IMG/VR virus record: IMGVR_UViG_3300044796_000657
Coordinates: 248,001 to 312,000 of that record
Direction: 5' to 3' (one strand)
Length of the DNA stretch: 64,000 nt
Each line of letters begins with the position of its first letter. Position 1 is the first letter of the stretch. Positions 5,355-25,043 of this stretch are shown piece after piece. Below the pieces are notes generated by a model, which worked only from the letters and a program-made list of their open reading frames with translations, had not been told where the DNA came from and made no database searches. A program made the position numbers and the translations under genes.

Positions 5355-5606
5355 TCACTCTTTTTTCATAGCATCTTTATATTGCTTTGTTCTCTTGCAA
5401 CTAGAACACGTAACGGCACTAGCCAAACAACTGTGCTGAATAAGATTGCCGTGCTTACGGAAATCGTTATAGCTTGACATGTCCGGAGCCGTATAGATCG
5501 TGTCACCGCAAATAAAAGTCCCACAAGCTGTAAAATCAGATAAAGCGTAATGGACTGTAATTTTTGGTTCGATTGCTGCCTTCTTAACCTTCATAATAAT
5601 TCTCAC
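5355..5606 (-). CDS. Hypothetical Cys/His-containing protein
   Basis: 83-aa ORF coupled to the tyrS stop. Confidence 0.45.
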   Translation of the reverse strand: MRIIMKVKKAAIEPKITVHYALSDFTACGTFICGDTIYTAPDMSSYNDFRKHGNLIQHSCLASAVTCSSCKRTKQYKDAMKKE

Positions 5607-6760
5607 TGGAATACAATTGCGTACTTTCTGCCTACCCGTAAACGGCGACTAATGCCACCCGTCTCCATCTTAATTGCCAAGAATGGATCAATCACTTTTT
5701 CGCCGTCCAAATCCACGGCACCCTGAATAACCAAGCGACGGGCTTCATTGTTGCTAGTAGTCAAACCAGCAGCACAAATCAGCCTCATAAGCGTGGTGTC
5801 ATTCACCAAAACCTTAACTTCGGGAATGTCATCAGGCTCTTTGCGAAGACTGAATTGGTTAACCCATTGAACAGCCGCCGCCGCAGCCTTATCTGTACCA
5901 TGCATTGATTCTACAATACGAAGCGCAAGGGACTTTTTACTATCCAAAGGTGCGATCCAATCAATGCCATTCGTGAGCAAATCCACCCACTCTTGCATAA
6001 GTGTATCAGGAATGCTCATCACTTTACAGTACATTTCAAAAGGCTCTTCATCTACACCGATGTAGTTTCCGAGACTTTTGCCCATTTTCTTAACGCCGTC
6101 CATGCCCCGCAAGATCGGCAAAGTGATACAAACTTGCTGTTCCATACCAGCAAGTTTCTGCATATCACGGCCAAAATTCAAGTTAAACATCTGTTCTGTG
6201 CCGCCAAGTTCAACATCGGCAGCAACCATCACACTGTCGTACCCTTGTAGCATCGGGTACATCAACTCACTCACCTGAATAGGTTGTTCGGCTTTAAATC
6301 GATTGTTGAAATCCTCACGATCCAATATCTGACTGACTGTGAAGGTCTTAAGTTGCTCTAATGTCCATCGCAAATCGCATTTATTCAGCCAAGTACTGTT
6401 AAGATTGACTTCTGCCTTCTTGATGTCTACAACTTTACCAATTTGCTTCAAGTACTTCCGAGCATTATCCTTGGCTTCGTCAGGGGTGATTGAAGTGCTT
6501 CGAAGTTCATTTCTGCCTGTGGGATCGCCGATTGATGCCGTGAAGTCGCCCATAATGAGTACGGCAATATGTCCTTCATCTTGAAACGCCTTCATTAACC
6601 TCAATGGAACAGTATGTCCCAAGTGTACGTGCGGAGTGGTAGGATCAATGCCGTACTTGACACGCAAGGGACGACCCTTCTTCAGCTTCGCTTCCAAGGC
6701 GGGAACTTTTGAAGGGTCAAATTGCTTAACTTTTTCAAGTACCTTGCTCATATCATTCAT
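5603..6760 (-). CDS. tyrS: Tyrosyl-tRNA synthetase
   Basis: YGIDPTTPHVHLGH (HIGH), ELGGTEQMFN, KMGKSLGN (KMSKS) and a C-terminal S4 domain. Confidence 0.95.
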   Translation of the reverse strand: MNDMSKVLEKVKQFDPSKVPALEAKLKKGRPLRVKYGIDPTTPHVHLGHTVPLRLMKAFQDEGHIAVLIMGDFTASIGDPTGRNELRSTSITPDEAKDNARKYLKQIGKVVDIKKAEVNLNSTWLNKCDLRWTLEQLKTFTVSQILDREDFNNRFKAEQPIQVSELMYPMLQGYDSVMVAADVELGGTEQMFNLNFGRDMQKLAGMEQQVCITLPILRGMDGVKKMGKSLGNYIGVDEEPFEMYCKVMSIPDTLMQEWVDLLTNGIDWIAPLDSKKSLALRIVESMHGTDKAAAAAVQWVNQFSLRKEPDDIPEVKVLVNDTTLMRLICAAGLTTSNNEARRLVIQGAVDLDGEKVIDPFLAIKMETGGISRRLRVGRKYAIVFQ

Positions 6761-12041: not shown

Positions 12042-12524
12042 TTATCCTTCGCCATAAATATCTTTCAGCTTACTTTCCATATCCGACTGAGTAGAAGGCG
12101 ACGACATGACATTCTTTCCATAAAGACTGTCCATTTCCTTACGCATGTTGTAACAAAGCTCTTTTGCCGTACTATGAGCATAATCCATAGACTTCAAAAA
12201 GCCGTAAAGTTCATCCTTAACATACTCGGCCATTCTCACCCGTTCCAACAAAGCACCAACTTCTTCATCCGATTTGGCTGATGCTTCTGCCATCTTATCA
12301 CTCAAATTATGCGTTACCTTGTATTCACGCAACTTGGAATTGAATAAGACCGTATGCTGGTCGTTCAATCTCTTAGCAATAAAAGAAGCATCATTGTGCT
12401 TGTTTTGATAATACCTATGTAACGAAGCGTACTTGGTAAGAAAGTCATTGATATTCTCTTGCGAAAACTCCAATGCCTTGTCATCAAGATTAACGTCTTC
12501 TTTGCCGACTTTGACCATTCCCAT
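12042..12524 (-). CDS. UvsY-like recombination mediator
   Basis: 160-aa helical protein resembling T4 UvsY in size and pattern; next to the helicase. Confidence 0.55.
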   Translation of the reverse strand: MGMVKVGKEDVNLDDKALEFSQENINDFLTKYASLHRYYQNKHNDASFIAKRLNDQHTVLFNSKLREYKVTHNLSDKMAEASAKSDEEVGALLERVRMAEYVKDELYGFLKSMDYAHSTAKELCYNMRKEMDSLYGKNVMSSPSTQSDMESKLKDIYGEG

Positions 12525-13528
12525 TATTGTGCCTTTATTTGAAGAAACTCTTTTATCAAATCATCAATATTGTTAATATCTGAGTAGTGGATAATCAACA
12601 ATGGAATCTTTTTATCTTTAGCCCATCTACTTTTTATATGATCTCGTTTTTTTATAGCCGCCAAATTATCAATAGCATCATCACAACTTATTGTGTTAGA
12701 CCAATATACAGGAACATAATGTTGTATGCCATTATATTCAATAAGAAATTGATTTTCCTTAATGTTAACTAAAAAATCAAATGGCAACCTGTTGACACTA
12801 ATGCAATCTTCAAATGTGGCTTGCCTAATAAAAGTTAAATTTTGTTGAGACAAAAATTCAACAATCTTTTTTTCACCTCTTGATTCACAGCAAAAAGGAC
12901 AACCTCTGCCGCCAGATCGATTACATATCATCGCTTCCCATTGGTGTTCTTTAACAAAAGAACATTGCCACCAAACCTTTTTATGACTTCCTGCTGTCAC
13001 TTCATACGGCGTTATTTGATTTATGGAATGCCACTCTTGTGACAGAATTGGATGCGTTGTCGCCAAACAATTTGATTGTACAATTTTATGCGTACGACCG
13101 ACACTGCGGCAACAAGGACATCCTCTACCAGCAAGTCTTTTTACTGGACTTGCAAACCATTCGTGATCTTCAGCAACGAAACATTTCCACCAAACTTTAA
13201 TACCGCTACCAATAGTCAAATCAAACGGTGAAAAACTATTTTTCAGATGCCACTGTTTTGCTAACTCTGGCTCTTTTGTCGCAATACAATTAGACAGAGA
13301 TACTTTTTGCCCAGCACAAAAAGGACATTTCGTTTTTTCAATAACTCGTTTATTAACGGTAGTTTGCCACTCATGATCTTCGGCAGTTGAACATTTCCAC
13401 CATATTTTTTTATGACTTCCAAAGCTAATTTCAAAAGGATTTATGCCCAAATTTTTAGTCGGATGCCATTCTTTAACTATTTCTGGGTACAATTTACCGA
13501 AGCAGTTTTTATTCGTGACTTTTTTCAT
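12524..13528 (-). CDS. Zinc-ribbon-repeat protein with C-terminal PD-(D/E)xK/Vsr-like endonuclease; probable free-standing homing endonuclease
   Basis: Three KxWWxC...HEW...CP(F/C)C repeats, then SRGEKKI, LPFDF, IEYNGIQHY and IPLLII. Confidence 0.75.
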   Translation of the reverse strand: MKKVTNKNCFGKLYPEIVKEWHPTKNLGINPFEISFGSHKKIWWKCSTAEDHEWQTTVNKRVIEKTKCPFCAGQKVSLSNCIATKEPELAKQWHLKNSFSPFDLTIGSGIKVWWKCFVAEDHEWFASPVKRLAGRGCPCCRSVGRTHKIVQSNCLATTHPILSQEWHSINQITPYEVTAGSHKKVWWQCSFVKEHQWEAMICNRSGGRGCPFCCESRGEKKIVEFLSQQNLTFIRQATFEDCISVNRLPFDFLVNIKENQFLIEYNGIQHYVPVYWSNTISCDDAIDNLAAIKKRDHIKSRWAKDKKIPLLIIHYSDINNIDDLIKEFLQIKAQ

Positions 13529-19808: not shown

Positions 19809-20612
19809 TTAGAAGTATTTTAGTGATGTAATCACAGTATCGATAATTTCATCTTTGTCTTGCGTTGGTGTGAAGAACGCATCCAAATACGGAATATCAA
19901 TTTCCCAATCGCCACCATCTTGTCCAATTGATACGGTGGACACAATCACGTGAATTAATCCACGTTTTTTATCGAAGTTAACATCTATTGTCGCTTCGGG
20001 TGTTTGTGTAACATTTCTAGTTCTACTTGCCAATTTTCCTACGCCCATGCCTCTAAGATTGAAATAAATGACGAAATAGTCTTTTCGTACTTCTTTGATG
20101 TCTTGAAAAATGTATAAATCGGGTGCGTGTGCCCTTACTCTTGCGCTCATCCTCTTAGCCAGATTGATGACTTCGCATTTCTCGGTTGCTACTTCTAATT
20201 GATCAAAATAAATTTTTTCTACTTGCTTGAAAACGTCGTCCGCTACAAACTCTTCTTTCCCTGCGTAATCTTTCAATTTTGGTTTGAATACGTTTTTGAG
20301 AATCCAAGTCGACGTACCTTCTAGGTCGGTAATGCGTCTTTCAACGAAAATGGTGATATTTGGCGTTAATTTAACTCTTACGGCTCCGGCATCTTTGCCG
20401 CCCCATACGACTTGATCTAAAAATGCATGACTTGAACGTATGCGATTGCCGATTTTCTTGTGTGCGAGAGTCCCCATCAGCCATTCGACGCTAAAGGGCT
20501 TGACCGGCATTTCGTCTTCTGCCGTATCATCCTCTGCGGCTAATACTTTCTTAGCTTCAAGATCATCGAAGCCAAATATGTCGCTTTCAAAATAACTCTT
20601 AAATACACCCAT
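19809..20612 (-). CDS. Hypothetical protein with capsid-targeting-like N-terminus
   Basis: MGVFKSYFE; TAAATA 6 nt upstream. Confidence 0.55.
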   Translation of the reverse strand: MGVFKSYFESDIFGFDDLEAKKVLAAEDDTAEDEMPVKPFSVEWLMGTLAHKKIGNRIRSSHAFLDQVVWGGKDAGAVRVKLTPNITIFVERRITDLEGTSTWILKNVFKPKLKDYAGKEEFVADDVFKQVEKIYFDQLEVATEKCEVINLAKRMSARVRAHAPDLYIFQDIKEVRKDYFVIYFNLRGMGVGKLASRTRNVTQTPEATIDVNFDKKRGLIHVIVSTVSIGQDGGDWEIDIPYLDAFFTPTQDKDEIIDTVITSLKYF

Positions 20613-20618
20613 CCTATA

Positions 20619-20624
20619 TATTTA
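20619..20624 (-). promoter_or_regulatory. TAAATA late-promoter-like box
   Basis: TAAATA-tatagg-ATG(20612). Confidence 0.5.
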
Positions 20625-20667
20625 CTCCTAATGGTTCATTTCTATGTACACATCGTAAAGGCTAAAA

Positions 20668-20952
20668 ATGAAATTCCGTGATTTTGTAAGGTTAAAAGAA
20701 GGCGTTGATTTATCAGACATCCGTGATATGATTTTGAGAGCGATAGGCGGCAACCCCGAAAGTCACGAGGCGTTTAATGCTCCGCTCACTCAGTTTGTAG
20801 AACCGGGGGATTTGGTCAACCGACTTAATTCACTAAAGGGACTCGCTGACCTAATCAAAGATAATGCTTCGGCAATTGATGCGATACAGAACGCACAGAC
20901 CAACAATTTAACTGTTGGACAATTGGCCGTGATTTTGACACGACAAGGATAA
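20668..20952 (+). CDS. Small protein with capsid-targeting-like N-terminus
   Basis: MKFRDFVRLKE. Confidence 0.55.
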   Translation: MKFRDFVRLKEGVDLSDIRDMILRAIGGNPESHEAFNAPLTQFVEPGDLVNRLNSLKGLADLIKDNASAIDAIQNAQTNNLTVGQLAVILTRQG

Positions 20953-20955
20953 CAA

Positions 20956-21189
20956 ATGCTCAATTCCGAACTTTCATTGTACGAAGGTATGCACGTGAAA
21001 ATTCAAGCGACTAATTATGGAATCGGACCTGAAACCATTGTTAAGGGAAAGTTGCGGTTTTCGGGTTCTACAAAACGTTGGTTCGTTGAAAGAACGGGCG
21101 TCTACGCCAATTTTACGTCGATGGAAATCAGCAAAATTGATCTTTGGACTCCCCAATACGAAGTTGAGATATTAAAGGAGACTCACTAA
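20956..21189 (+). CDS. Array paralog 1 of 6 (small beta-rich, Sm/SH3-like?)
   Basis: MLNSEL..Y.G..VKI...GKLRF...YEVEIL. Confidence 0.65.
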   Translation: MLNSELSLYEGMHVKIQATNYGIGPETIVKGKLRFSGSTKRWFVERTGVYANFTSMEISKIDLWTPQYEVEILKETH

Positions 21190-21407
21190 TGACCAATGCA
21201 GAATTGAAAATACTTCGCAATAAACGGGTCGAAGTTAAGTTTAGCGACCGAAGTAGTGCTGCCGGTACTACTCGCAAGGGTCTTTTGACGTACAATTATG
21301 ATCGTGAGCGATGGATGGTCGGTTCAAAATCGTTCTATCTCGACGACATTGAAACCGTTGTCAAAATACAGCCGTACGTAGTGGAGATTCTTGATGAAGC
21401 CAATTAG
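21189..21407 (+). CDS. Array paralog 2 of 6
   Basis: NKRVEV...GLLTY...VVEILD. Confidence 0.65.
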   Translation: MTNAELKILRNKRVEVKFSDRSSAAGTTRKGLLTYNYDRERWMVGSKSFYLDDIETVVKIQPYVVEILDEAN

Positions 21408-21618
21408 CCTCAAACCATTTCTCAATAAGCGAGTTGAAATTACGAGAATTCCATTAACGGTGGATGATCCTCGCACTGTTAGAGGCCGATTAAGCTACAA
21501 GAAGTCCGATCCTTATGGGTATTTTCGCATAGACAACACAGCATATTGCTCGTTCCGAGTCACTTCTATCAAACTAGCACCGGCAATTAGCGTGGAGATT
21601 CTCGATGCTCAAGAGTGA
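21394..21618 (+). CDS. Array paralog 3 of 6
   Basis: ATG at 21394 after GGAG-7nt; NKRVEI...GRLSY...SVEILD. Confidence 0.65.
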   Translation: MKPISLKPFLNKRVEITRIPLTVDDPRTVRGRLSYKKSDPYGYFRIDNTAYCSFRVTSIKLAPAISVEILDAQE

Positions 21619-21832
21619 GTTCAAGCCATATGTTGGCAAAAAAGTTATTCTCCATAGAGGCGTGTTCAATGGTGTCCAATTGCCGCCTTCTACTGGTGTA
21701 ATAACTACCACAAAGATTCAACTTATCAATTATTATTACATCAATGGAATGGCCTTTAATGTTTCCAATGTAACAAGTGTTGAAGTTGTCAAACCAAAGC
21801 TAACTGTGGAGATCCTTGATGTATACCAGTGA
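21605..21832 (+). CDS. Array paralog 4 of 6
   Basis: GKKVIL...GVIT...TVEILD. Confidence 0.65.
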   Translation: MLKSEFKPYVGKKVILHRGVFNGVQLPPSTGVITTTKIQLINYYYINGMAFNVSNVTSVEVVKPKLTVEILDVYQ

Positions 21833-22031
21833 AATAATACCCTACTTGAATAAAAAGGTAGCTATCGTTTGCTATAAATTTGGCATACCTATGAATTACA
21901 CGGGCGTATTGACAATGAGCGACGACTCTTATGGCTATTGTCACATTGATAAGTCTCCCCACTGCATCAAATACATCACTCAAATTAAGTTAAAATCATC
22001 CATCAAAGTAGAGATTCTCGATGTTGATTAA
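21819..22031 (+). CDS. Array paralog 5 of 6
   Basis: ATG at 21819; NKKVAI...GVLTM...KVEILD. Confidence 0.65.
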   Translation: MYTSEIIPYLNKKVAIVCYKFGIPMNYTGVLTMSDDSYGYCHIDKSPHCIKYITQIKLKSSIKVEILDVD

Positions 22032-22269
22032 CGAAATTATTCCTTTTAGCGGCCAAAAAGTCATAGTGACATGTATTAAGTATAAAGTTTCAGGTATCAT
22101 GCAGCAACCTTACAAGCTTTATGGTACCGAATACGTTGTAGTACAAAAAGACAATTTGTTCCACTATAACTTGCGTTTAGGAAATATAGTTTCCATTGAA
22201 CCACAACCATCAAAATACAAAGTGGAGATTTTAGATGAATCTCAATACGCTGCCAATCAGCATAGTTAA
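22021..22269 (+). CDS. Array paralog 6 of 6
   Basis: GQKVIV...GIM...KVEILD; its 3' end overlaps the PheRS start. Confidence 0.65.
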   Translation: MLINEIIPFSGQKVIVTCIKYKVSGIMQQPYKLYGTEYVVVQKDNLFHYNLRLGNIVSIEPQPSKYKVEILDESQYAANQHS

Positions 22270-23260
22270 CAAGATGGGAAAGAACCTTCATCAAAAAAAG
22301 GATCACCCATTACAAAAACTCCAAAAACGTATCACAAGTCTCTTCACAGACTTCAAAATCTTTGATCAAGTTTATCCAGTAGTATCGGTTGAGGATAACT
22401 TCGACCGCCTTTTGGTACCACACAATCACCCGTCACGCAGCCCTAGCGACACTTACTATCTGGACAATAAAGAAGTCCTTCGTACTCATACTTCAGCACA
22501 CCAACACCAGTTGCTTCGCCGTGGAAACAAAAAGTTCCTAGTGGTGGGTGATGTTTACCGCAAGGATGAAATCGATAGGAACCATTATCCCGTCTTTCAC
22601 CAGATTGAAGGCGTTTGCATCTATCCGGATGATGAGCGGGAAGTTGAAGAAAAACTCCATCATCATATTTACGATGTTATGAGTGATTTGTTCCCCAACA
22701 TGCCAACACGTCGATTAAAAAGCAGTTTCCCCTTCACTCATCCGTCGTGGGAATACGAGGTTTTCTTTAAGCAGAACTGGTTAGAGATTTTGGGTTGTGG
22801 TATCATCCAGCCAGAAATTTTGAAATCTGCCGAAGTTAAAGGTAAAGGTTGGGCATTCGGCATGGGATTGGAACGCCTAGCGATGGCATTGTATGACATT
22901 CCCGATATTCGTTACTTCTGGTCAGATGATCCGAGAACCACAGACCAGTTCAAGGATATGGGCGACGACTTCAAATTCAAACCGTACAGCCTCCATCCAT
23001 CATGCTATAAGGATATTGCGTTTTGGCTTAAGGGGGAATTTAATACGGGCGAATTCTTTCAAATGATACGTGATGAAGGCCAAGACCTTATCGAAAGAGT
23101 TGTCAAAACGGACACCTACACCAGAGAAGACGGCAAAACAAGTATATGTTACCGTATCTTCTACTGCTCAATGGATAGGACGCTGACAAACGAAGAGATT
23201 GATACTATCCAATTCAGAATACGCAAAAGAATGAGCGATTTTAACGTGGAGCTAAGATGA
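22235..23260 (+). CDS. pheS: Monomeric (organellar-type) phenylalanyl-tRNA synthetase: catalytic domain plus FDX-ACB
   Basis: HPSR..SDTYY, VLRTHTSAHQ, GDVYRKDEIDRNHYPVFHQIEG, FPFTHPSWE, WLEILGCG, GWAFGMGLERLAM; C-terminal YKDIAFW...SICYRI.Y...RTLTNEEI. Confidence 0.92.
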   Translation: MNLNTLPISIVNKMGKNLHQKKDHPLQKLQKRITSLFTDFKIFDQVYPVVSVEDNFDRLLVPHNHPSRSPSDTYYLDNKEVLRTHTSAHQHQLLRRGNKKFLVVGDVYRKDEIDRNHYPVFHQIEGVCIYPDDEREVEEKLHHHIYDVMSDLFPNMPTRRLKSSFPFTHPSWEYEVFFKQNWLEILGCGIIQPEILKSAEVKGKGWAFGMGLERLAMALYDIPDIRYFWSDDPRTTDQFKDMGDDFKFKPYSLHPSCYKDIAFWLKGEFNTGEFFQMIRDEGQDLIERVVKTDTYTREDGKTSICYRIFYCSMDRTLTNEEIDTIQFRIRKRMSDFNVELR

Positions 23261-23439
23261 ACTGCAAACTCTGCGATGGACTTGGCATGGTCGCCCGCCC
23301 CTATGACGAAACATTGGGGTTTTGGGAGGACTGCCCATTATGCATCAAACCAGTTAAGGTTCAAAGGCCGCCTTATGGCTTGTTAATATTTTTCTTTGTC
23401 GTTATTGTTACGATTTTCTTGTACAGCATGGGGAAATGA
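23257..23439 (+). CDS. Small CxxC zinc-finger protein with C-terminal TM helix
   Basis: CKLCDGLG...CPLC followed by a hydrophobic tail. Confidence 0.5.
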   Translation: MNCKLCDGLGMVARPYDETLGFWEDCPLCIKPVKVQRPPYGLLIFFFVVIVTIFLYSMGK

Positions 23440-23672
23440 TCATGATCGATGCATTCGGCCAACCAATCGGCCTTATAACACTTTGCTGCCGAGGCACCAA
23501 AGGAAGCGGCGGCACGGTTTACAATGGAGGGGTGGTAATTAAAGTGTTTGAGCAGACACACACAAGCCCAGACAGAGTTACTGTTGAAGTCAAACAAACA
23601 AGTGCTCGTCATGGAATAACGCCTTCAAACCCAATCCTTTACGCAAGTAATGTTGTTGTTTTACCGCAATAA
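23436..23672 (+). CDS. Hypothetical protein
   Basis: 78 aa, coupled by ATGA overlap. Confidence 0.45.
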   Translation: MIMIDAFGQPIGLITLCCRGTKGSGGTVYNGGVVIKVFEQTHTSPDRVTVEVKQTSARHGITPSNPILYASNVVVLPQ

Positions 23673-23693: not shown

Positions 23694-25043
23694 ATGGAAC
23701 TGCAAAACCTCCTTGGAAGCAACCAGTTTTTCTCTGGTGGCTTAGTGTTAATGGTGTTAGGTGGGCTACTCGCCTACTTCAGACACCTTCCAGCCAAGCT
23801 CTACGCCTTCTTTGAACGATTCTTCATCTTGAAGATTGACATTCAAGACGAAGACGAAGCCTATCAATGGATGCAGGTTTGGCTTGCTGACAGGCTCAAA
23901 CACGCACTTTCTATCTCCGTTATTACCAAACGAAAAAACGAACTTCGAGACTTTTCCGAAGACGAGTACATCACCAAACCCAAGTCGCAAATCTACTTCG
24001 TTCCGGCAGTAGGTACCTACTTCTTCTGGTATAAGAATAGGTTCGTTACACTTAACAGATCCCGTCAAGAGAATACCACCGGCGGAAACATGTTAAGTTC
24101 CACTGGTACTGGACTCACTAGCGCCAGAGCAAAAGAGTCCTTCACATTCAGAGTTTTTTCCCGCAACAAAGAGATTGCTACGTCGCTCATTACCGAAGCC
24201 CGTGACATGGCCGTACCAGAAGACGGCAAACTGGAAATCCGTGTCGCTTCATGGGCACAATGGCGTACCGGTACCAGAATCAAACCGAGAGACTTGGAGT
24301 CTGTCATTTTGGCGGGCGATAAGGTCGTGGAAATCGCTGCGGTCATCAAGGAATTCTTGGATAGTCGTGACTGGTACGAAAAAGTCGGTGTTCCTTACCG
24401 TCTATCCTTCTTGTTCAAAGGCCCGCCCGGTAATGGCAAGACAACTGCCGCCAAAGCCTTGGGTGGCTACTTCGGCATGAACATCCACGTTCTCGTTTTA
24501 TCTGATCCAGATTTGAACGACAACAAAATCACCGAGCTTCTCTCTAACGTACCCGAAGGCAGTATCGTATTGTTGGAGGATATTGATTGTGCTTTCAATC
24601 AACGTAATAGGGTTGGGAAAGATGGCGGCTTAACATTCAGCGGATTGTTAAATGCTATTGATGGTGTGGCGAGTAGTGAAGGTCGTATTCTCATTATGAC
24701 GACTAATCACGTTGAGAATCTTGATTCTGCCCTCATCCGTCCCGGCAGAGCTGACAAACACTATACGTTCGGCAATGCTACGGGGGAACAGGCTACCAAG
24801 CTCTACAATCGTTTCTTCCCCGGCAACGTCAAGATGGGGGAAGAGTTTGGAAAATTGGTACCAAATGAAGTCTATAGTATGGCCGTACTTCAATGTTACT
24901 TGATGTCATATCGCCATCAACCGTATGAAGCGGTTGTTAACATTGCTAAAATTGCGGATATACAAGCGAACATGATTCCATTACCACCCGAATCACCGCC
25001 TGAACCTGACTCGGTGTCATTGTCGGAAAAATCGGAAGACTAA
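23694..25043 (+). CDS. BCS1-like membrane-anchored AAA+ ATPase
   Basis: N-terminal TM (NQFFSGGLVLMVLG), AYQWMQVWL, FVPAVGTYFFWYKNR, WY..VGVPYR, GPPGNGKT, LLEDIDCAF, LTFSGLLNAIDGV.S.EGRI, ALIRPGRAD. Confidence 0.88.
   Translation: MELQNLLGSNQFFSGGLVLMVLGGLLAYFRHLPAKLYAFFERFFILKIDIQDEDEAYQWMQVWLADRLKHALSISVITKRKNELRDFSEDEYITKPKSQIYFVPAVGTYFFWYKNRFVTLNRSRQENTTGGNMLSSTGTGLTSARAKESFTFRVFSRNKEIATSLITEARDMAVPEDGKLEIRVASWAQWRTGTRIKPRDLESVILAGDKVVEIAAVIKEFLDSRDWYEKVGVPYRLSFLFKGPPGNGKTTAAKALGGYFGMNIHVLVLSDPDLNDNKITELLSNVPEGSIVLLEDIDCAFNQRNRVGKDGGLTFSGLLNAIDGVASSEGRILIMTTNHVENLDSALIRPGRADKHYTFGNATGEQATKLYNRFFPGNVKMGEEFGKLVPNEVYSMAVLQCYLMSYRHQPYEAVVNIAKIADIQANMIPLPPESPPEPDSVSLSEKSED

Follow-up and report, generated by a model that had tools for sequence, protein, structure and literature searches.

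A mitochondrial-type, single-chain phenylalanyl-tRNA synthetase gene in a huge phage from peat and its relatives in viruses and eukaryotes

Why would a virus of bacteria encode the phenylalanyl-tRNA synthetase (PheRS) of an organelle, and how do the viral and organellar enzymes relate to each other? The PheRS of most bacteria is an (alpha-beta)2 tetramer, and a chimeric monomer is typical of the mitochondrial and chloroplast enzymes; to our knowledge, the fused monomeric PheRS has no bacterial counterpart. The question is raised by a stretch of 64,000 nucleotides (hereafter the window) which corresponds to positions 248001-312000 of a 430,229-bp IMG/VR record from a peat sample (IMGVR_UViG_3300044796_000657, here G000; CheckV completeness 97%). 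At 22235..23260 on the plus strand of the window lies a gene which the ORF, Pfam, NCBIfam and PDB searches and a structural model identify as a single-chain PheRS of the mitochondrial/organellar type, here called PheRS-M.

The PheRS-M ORF comprises 341 codons plus a stop, begins with ATG, has no internal stop and was translated with no alternative genetic code. Its product joins a class II PheRS catalytic core (PF01409, tRNA-synt_2d; residues 15-239, 22277..22951, plus strand; Pfam E 6e-55) to an FDX-ACB anticodon-binding domain (PF03147; residues 252-341, 22988..23257, plus strand; E 4.3e-18). Both matches are far over the gathering scores and the two domains are separated by a 12-residue linker alone. 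An earlier reading made from the letters only (hereafter the sequence-only reading) had proposed this 341-aa fusion of a catalytic class II domain with FDX-ACB; the Pfam matches confirm it, including the identity of the C-terminal domain. The FDX-ACB is a homologue of the B8 domain of bacterial PheT, and the C-terminal 97 residues of the phage protein match the last PheT domain (positions 698-798 of TIGR00472, pheT_bact). Across 25 homologues at approximately 50% identity, HTSAHQ, R109 of motif 2, FHQ.E, FPFT, A207/G209 and R214 of motif 3 are invariant, columns which we take to be the ATP and Phe-pocket positions. The motif 2 region, GDVYRKDEIDRNHYPVFHQIEGV, maps to 22547..22615 (plus strand), with R109, Q123 and E125 invariant in the family, and the motif 3 region, GWAFGMGLERLAMALY, to 22847..22894 (plus strand), with A207, G209 and R214 equally constant.

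Profile comparisons place the protein with the organellar enzymes. The best NCBIfam equivalog is TIGR00469 (pheS_mito), with 330.7 bits against a cut-off of 258.35, and the score for the bacterial alpha subunit (TIGR00468) stays below its threshold (174 against 237.45). The same is true of NF051887, the "PheS-related mystery ligase SrmL" (252.9 bits against 300), a family of similar length that was compared through its HMM alone. Given that the latter alignment is full length (residues 20-333, profile positions 8-346 of 349), proteins with such an architecture may exist that NCBI curators do not call PheRS. All 10 homologues tested, phage and diatom organellar alike, score above the pheS_mito cut-off and below that of SrmL. 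Among solved structures, the best sequence match is human mitochondrial PheRS (E 1e-82), with both domains covered, whereas bacterial alpha subunits in the PDB match the core only. The AlphaFold2 model, for which 25 homologues served as input (mean pLDDT 93.6, pTM 0.89), has as its top Foldseek match human mtPheRS 3cmq (E 4e-41, TMq 0.90 and 38% identity for the predicted model); the open tRNA-bound form 3tup reaches 0.70, and bacterial alpha chains approximately 0.58 over the core only. The organelle-type assignment of the sequence-only reading is thus borne out by the family profile and by the closest solved structure. No PHROGs family spans the full architecture of core plus FDX-ACB.

The human and yeast mitochondrial enzymes (FARS2/MSF1; PDB 3CMQ, 3TUP) are the same chimera of an alpha-type core and a B8-like FDX-ACB. 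Like them, the phage protein has no editing module; it shares motifs 2 and 3 and the Phe-pocket residues with them, and both domains of its model superpose on human mtPheRS in the closed arrangement. However, the phage enzyme is without the insertion of 30-45 residues that opisthokont enzymes carry after motif 2. It also lacks an N-terminal targeting peptide, beginning at the conserved core where eukaryotic homologues have 30-90 extra N-terminal residues, and its gene has a bacterial-type ribosome-binding site. With respect to bacterial (alpha-beta)2 PheRS, the homology of the phage core is to PheS, at approximately 34-38% identity. In contrast to this heterotetramer, PheRS-M is encoded as one chain that lacks the N-terminal coiled coil and the B3/B4 editing site, and there is no PheT.

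The position of the gene within the phage genome provides additional clues. A GGAG Shine-Dalgarno lies 7 nt upstream of the ATG, and residues 4-25 align to a motif kept in all homologues, with I10 invariant in 25 sequences; the ATG at 22235 is therefore well supported. A 328-aa gene call in a public collection (P0001) was rejected, since the shorter start would remove this conserved N-terminal motif. Upstream, six tandem paralogous small genes of 71-82 aa (20956..22269, plus strand), 18-28% identical to the first member and each ending in VEILD, run into the PheRS start in the same direction. A 16-nt motif, GTGGAGATTCTTGATG, which comprises the end of one gene, GGAG and the next ATG, repeats along the array at a spacing of approximately 211 nt. 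Its fifth copy, GTGGAGATTTTAGATG (22222..22237, plus strand), unites the upstream VEILD end, the GGAG Shine-Dalgarno and the ATG of PheRS-M. From this arrangement of the nucleotide sequence, PheRS-M is probably translationally coupled to the phage small-gene array, and its embedding there is a strong argument against a chimeric assembly. No Pfam or PHROG family was found for the array, which also has no homology to the small ORFs that precede PheRS in other phages. Downstream, after two small ORFs, is a BCS1-like AAA ATPase (BCS1_N + AAA + AAA_lid_BCS1; 23694..25043, plus strand), whose best PDB match is the mitochondrial chaperone BCS1 (E 3e-66) and which also matches phrog_7485 (2e-78). The contig of P0002, the nearest relative (55-56% identity), repeats the order PheRS then BCS1-like, with the BCS1-like gene at L056 3509-4825. 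With the ATPase, another family known chiefly from mitochondria lies in the vicinity of a mitochondrial-type PheRS.

The carrier is a huge tailed phage (Caudoviricetes, >200 kb) of at least 430 kb. The 430,229-bp record contains a Terminase_6N large-terminase ORF of 560 aa, 37 tRNA genes and one tmRNA, while the window encodes a gp32-like SSB, RecA, a family A DNA polymerase (PolA), a DnaB-type helicase and DNA methylases, in agreement with the phage-encoded status claimed from the letters alone. The NCLDV capsid family PF04451 gave no match in the record, in a search run without a positive control. IMG/VR labels the record "provirus": it constitutes the first ~430 kb of the 614,480-bp peat contig Ga0480561_0000004, the remaining ~184 kb of which were trimmed as host. 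The 430-kb element may be a prophage or a phage of >600 kb. The GC content of the PheRS-M gene (0.428) equals that of the genome (0.43), codon use is similar to that of the neighbouring genes, and in an independent assembly one DNA contig spans the locus with 0 differences. Identical contigs from a peat metatranscriptome run cover 20600-22768 and 22825-23610; these are compatible with transcription of PheRS-M, but they may also be carried-over DNA. Elsewhere in the window, a 334-aa protein with three copies of the DUF4379 treble-clef zinc finger (E 1e-49; 12524-13528, minus strand) adjoins the DnaB-like helicase.

The sequence-only reading had noted that the window holds no pheT, and the observation extends to the entire record: the PheT hallmark B3_4 (PF03483) is absent across its 430,229 bp and was found in 14 of 14 control genomes. 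FDX-ACB occurs a single time in the record, as does a strong PheRS core, the second core match (25.9 bits) being a 255-aa class II fragment. The phage encodes a tRNA-Phe (G000 408772-408843) with a G1-C72 pair, discriminator A73 and anticodon GAA, which are the usual Phe identity elements. A separate tRNA-like gene (G000 399874-399948) has an 8-nt anticodon loop in which ARAGORN reads the 4-base anticodon GGAA (Ser|Phe), and could be a frameshift-suppressor-like or an aberrant tRNA. Further aminoacyl-tRNA synthetase (aaRS) genes of the same phage include a TyrRS-like (tyrosyl-tRNA synthetase-like) gene in the window (5603..6760, minus strand) and a 946-aa class I enzyme. Within the tRNA array are two adjacent short aaRS-like ORFs (G000 392959-393435 and 394027-394512), one of 241 aa (class Ib, Trp/Tyr type) and one of 255 aa (class II tRNA-synt_2b type), both too short for complete synthetases.

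To what extent is such a gene found in other viruses and in cells? A word-indexed protein search returned thousands of full-length two-domain homologues, at approximately 50% identity and mostly of 330-345 aa, and an exhaustive search of 50%-identity representatives gave 437 clusters at E <= 1e-30. In IMG/VR, 39 viral contigs with a PheRS-M homologue were recovered by an alignment-based scan. At least 28 other records of prokaryote viruses carry PheRS-M, at 40-55% identity; the six that are near-complete (>= 90%) measure 208-536 kb, and Terminase_6N is present in 10 of the 28, including 5 of these 6. B3_4 is absent from all 28, and the NCLDV capsid family had no match in them (again in a search without positive control). 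The remaining eleven IMG/VR contigs, four with GVMAG names, look like giant viruses judging from their scanned neighbours, namely ankyrin, RING and eukaryote-type ProRS. The neighbourhoods of short homologues (326-390 aa) were phage-like in 10 of 10 cases examined, with small ORFs densely packed in one direction and PhageMetallopep/PcfJ synteny, and many metagenomic contigs in a phage-like setting encode a homologue. Several PheRS-M neighbourhoods cluster with CCA-adding enzyme, Rnl1/RNA ligase, Tpt1, PTH2 or peptide deformylase. In L049, L060, the P0377 contig and L058, PheRS-M sits amid genes of tRNA repair and recycling, these neighbours being T4 Rnl1-type and other RNA ligases, CCA-adding enzyme, Tpt1 (PTS_2-RNA), an HD domain protein and PTH2.

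TIGR00469 exceeded its cut-off in 0 of 401 Bacillota genomes and in 0 of 14 control genomes, and a single-protein scan of IMG/VR and GTDB genome contigs retrieved only alpha-subunit matches, in two Bacilli MAGs. Similarly, tblastn against 50,697 deposited phage records found only alpha-type PheS matches, covering at most 69% of the query, many of which sit in records resembling host DNA. The uncultured phage L055 (LR745206.1, 634,780 bp) encodes a divergent PheS-like protein of 359-362 aa, approximately 28% identical over query residues 48-279, which forms a long branch near the base of PheRS-M.

We propose, with a probability of roughly 80%, that the phage gene encodes a functional single-chain PheRS which would charge tRNA-Phe(GAA) without a beta subunit or editing. 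Since motifs 2 and 3 are intact, the Phe-pocket residues are in place and a tRNA-Phe(GAA) with A73 is co-encoded, a one-gene Phe-charging enzyme independent of the host, as the sequence-only reading had suggested, may reasonably be inferred, with host Phe and ATP still needed. We infer likewise that the enzyme is catalytically active, that it works as a monomer, which tRNAs it accepts and that the phage gains from it. The enzyme would be made by the huge tailed phage during infection. Its N-terminal class II core would form Phe-AMP and then transfer Phe to A76 of tRNA-Phe, while the FDX-ACB would read the GAA anticodon by the closed-to-open swing known from human mtPheRS; neither a beta subunit nor an editing domain would be required. 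The substrates would be the phage's own tRNA-Phe and probably that of the host too, and the use of both is plausible by analogy, because human mtPheRS charges bacterial tRNA-Phe. PheRS-M would thus form part of a phage translation kit composed of 37 tRNAs, the tmRNA, TyrRS, the 946-aa class I aaRS and others, in which it would probably serve to supply Phe-tRNA-Phe once the machinery of the host is switched off, damaged or in short supply. A 341-aa monomer from one gene would do the job for which the host employs approximately 1,100 aa in two.

Other explanations have to be weighed against this proposal. The protein might represent a PheRS-M-like paralogue with a changed job, either an SrmL-like ligase, an enzyme for a non-standard acceptor (e.g., the GGAA-loop tRNA) or one for an amino acid other than Phe. 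The full-length alignment to NF051887 would be in line with this, as would the tRNA-like gene with its 4-base GGAA anticodon, but the SrmL score is under the cut-off and that of pheS_mito well over it, a pattern repeated in 10 of 10 homologues. Moreover, the residues of the Phe pocket and of the ATP site agree with those of genuine PheRS and a canonical tRNA-Phe(GAA) is co-encoded, and we consider a changed job unlikely. The presence of several relatives amid tRNA-repair genes (Rnl1, RNA ligase, Tpt1, CCA-adding enzyme) hints at a link to tRNA damage and defence, and in this context one might envisage a catalytically dead decoy or regulator which, for example, sequesters tRNA-Phe or shields it from a host anticodon nuclease. 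Yet active-site motifs that are invariant across homologues only ~50% identical follow the pattern of a working enzyme, and a dead protein strikes us as very improbable.

An origin of the gene outside the phage, through an assembly chimera, contaminating eukaryotic or organellar DNA, or a record that is in reality giant-virus or cellular, might be suspected from the "provirus" label of a record cut out of a 614,480-bp contig and from the ~50% identity of the protein to diatom organellar PheRS. Against it, the gene has no transit peptide and shares its bacterial Shine-Dalgarno and start codon arrangement with the phage gene array, its GC and codon use match those of the neighbours, and phage replication genes flank it on both sides. 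The identical DNA contig of the independent assembly, the recurrence of the PheRS-then-BCS1-like order in a 55%-identical relative and the 28 further phage records also tell against it, and such an origin is hardly credible.

How, then, does a single-chain PheRS in phages relate to what has been reported before? The nucleocytovirus PheRS is likewise a virus-borne member of the PheRS-M family and falls with the phage sequences in our trees, although its hosts are eukaryotic, unlike those of the phage enzymes. A study in which phages are neither sampled nor mentioned (Mol Biol Evol 2024, PMC11304981) showed that it groups with the organellar enzymes and proposed that an ancient exchange preceded LECA. 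Huge phages encode up to 15 aaRS, which have been called related to host enzymes (Al-Shayeb et al. 2020, PMC7162821). These phages provide the same setting as ours, with genomes >200 kb, many tRNAs, aaRS and genes for tRNA repair or modification. We found no mention of a mitochondrial-type monomeric PheRS in that paper (Al-Shayeb et al. 2020) and no description of a phage or jumbo-phage PheRS-M in full-text literature searches; in one deposited huge-phage genome such a gene is listed as "Phenylalanine--tRNA ligase alpha subunit." The family and its presence in giant viruses were thus already known, while its wide occurrence in phages of bacteria appears to be undescribed, with the sequences being public.

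The relationship between the viral and organellar enzymes was explored by identity and by phylogenetics. Named organellar enzymes, which come from diatoms, green algae, a plant, a chytrid, a choanoflagellate, Euglena, Vitrella and animals, share 42-52% identity with the window PheRS-M (approximately 50% for diatom organellar PheRS), and other viral PheRS-M share 41-56%. The main tree comprised 56 rows of labelled sequences and was inferred with IQ-TREE (LG+C20 PMSF, with UFBoot/SH-aLRT supports), with five bacterial PheS as the root. Eukaryotic PheRS-M form one group (82/86), which also contains the giant-virus-like L013, and the phage sequence belongs to a viral clade outside that of the eukaryotic mtPheRS. 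L013 (IMG/VR_UViG_3300035162_000991) groups with the diatom (Cyclotella) enzyme inside the eukaryotic clade, which points to a later, independent acquisition from an algal host. The closest partner of the window PheRS-M is P0002 (100/98), and L006 joins the two (96/87). The best tree places these three as sister to the eukaryotes (72/84) and has its root among the phages, with backbone supports of only 43-79. A giant-virus-like clade composed of L019, L020, L021, L028, L039 and L040 (100/99) branches inside the phage diversity in the same tree. The contigs of these six have ankyrin, RING and eukaryote-type ProRS neighbours, and one has a GVMAG name.

In AU tests, neither the monophyly of all viral sequences as sister to the eukaryotes (delta lnL 1.7, p 0.45) nor a single clade of giant viruses plus eukaryotes (delta lnL 16, p 0.19) was rejected. 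The backbone differed in a FastTree run and in a quick run of 64 rows, and the FastTree topology with eukaryotes nested among phages was set aside, as the better model changed the backbone. Judged from these alignments, the closest relatives of the eukaryotic PheRS-M are the viral ones and vice versa, with the eukaryotes as a single clan. The phylogeny that the sequence-only reading had called for thus delivers a single eukaryotic group with the viral sequences as its nearest neighbours. Both the phage-rooted best tree and viral monophyly (AU p 0.45) are compatible with the data, as is either direction of transfer. The relevance to the origin of organellar PheRS asserted in that reading holds nonetheless, given this closest relationship and the fact that no cellular prokaryote in the sample searched carries the enzyme.

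In this context, we put forward as a tentative scenario, possible rather than probable, that the single-chain PheRS was an invention of large phages, passed to the proto-mitochondrial or eukaryotic lineage before LECA. If so, FARS2 would be a further phage-derived part of the mitochondrial information system, next to the T7-like RNA polymerase, Twinkle and Pol gamma, and the window gene, P0002 and L006 would represent the nearest sampled phage relatives of the organellar enzymes. The PheRS of giant viruses would likewise come from the phage pool, and a one-gene enzyme would have been at a premium in large phages.

Irrespective of direction, the window gene is not a one-off but one of hundreds in huge phages, part of a broad and deep clade of a mitochondrial-type enzyme in viruses of bacteria. 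This brings phages into a discussion that had until now included eukaryotes and giant viruses only. The distance of the phage enzymes from organellar PheRS (42-52% identity) is similar to that among themselves, which makes the origin of the organellar enzyme testable with real sequences. A monomeric PheRS of ~340 aa from a bacterial context, devoid of an editing domain, is also a possible compact part for cell-free translation and genetic-code work. For the phages themselves, PheRS-M offers a handle on how huge phages sustain translation in their hosts.
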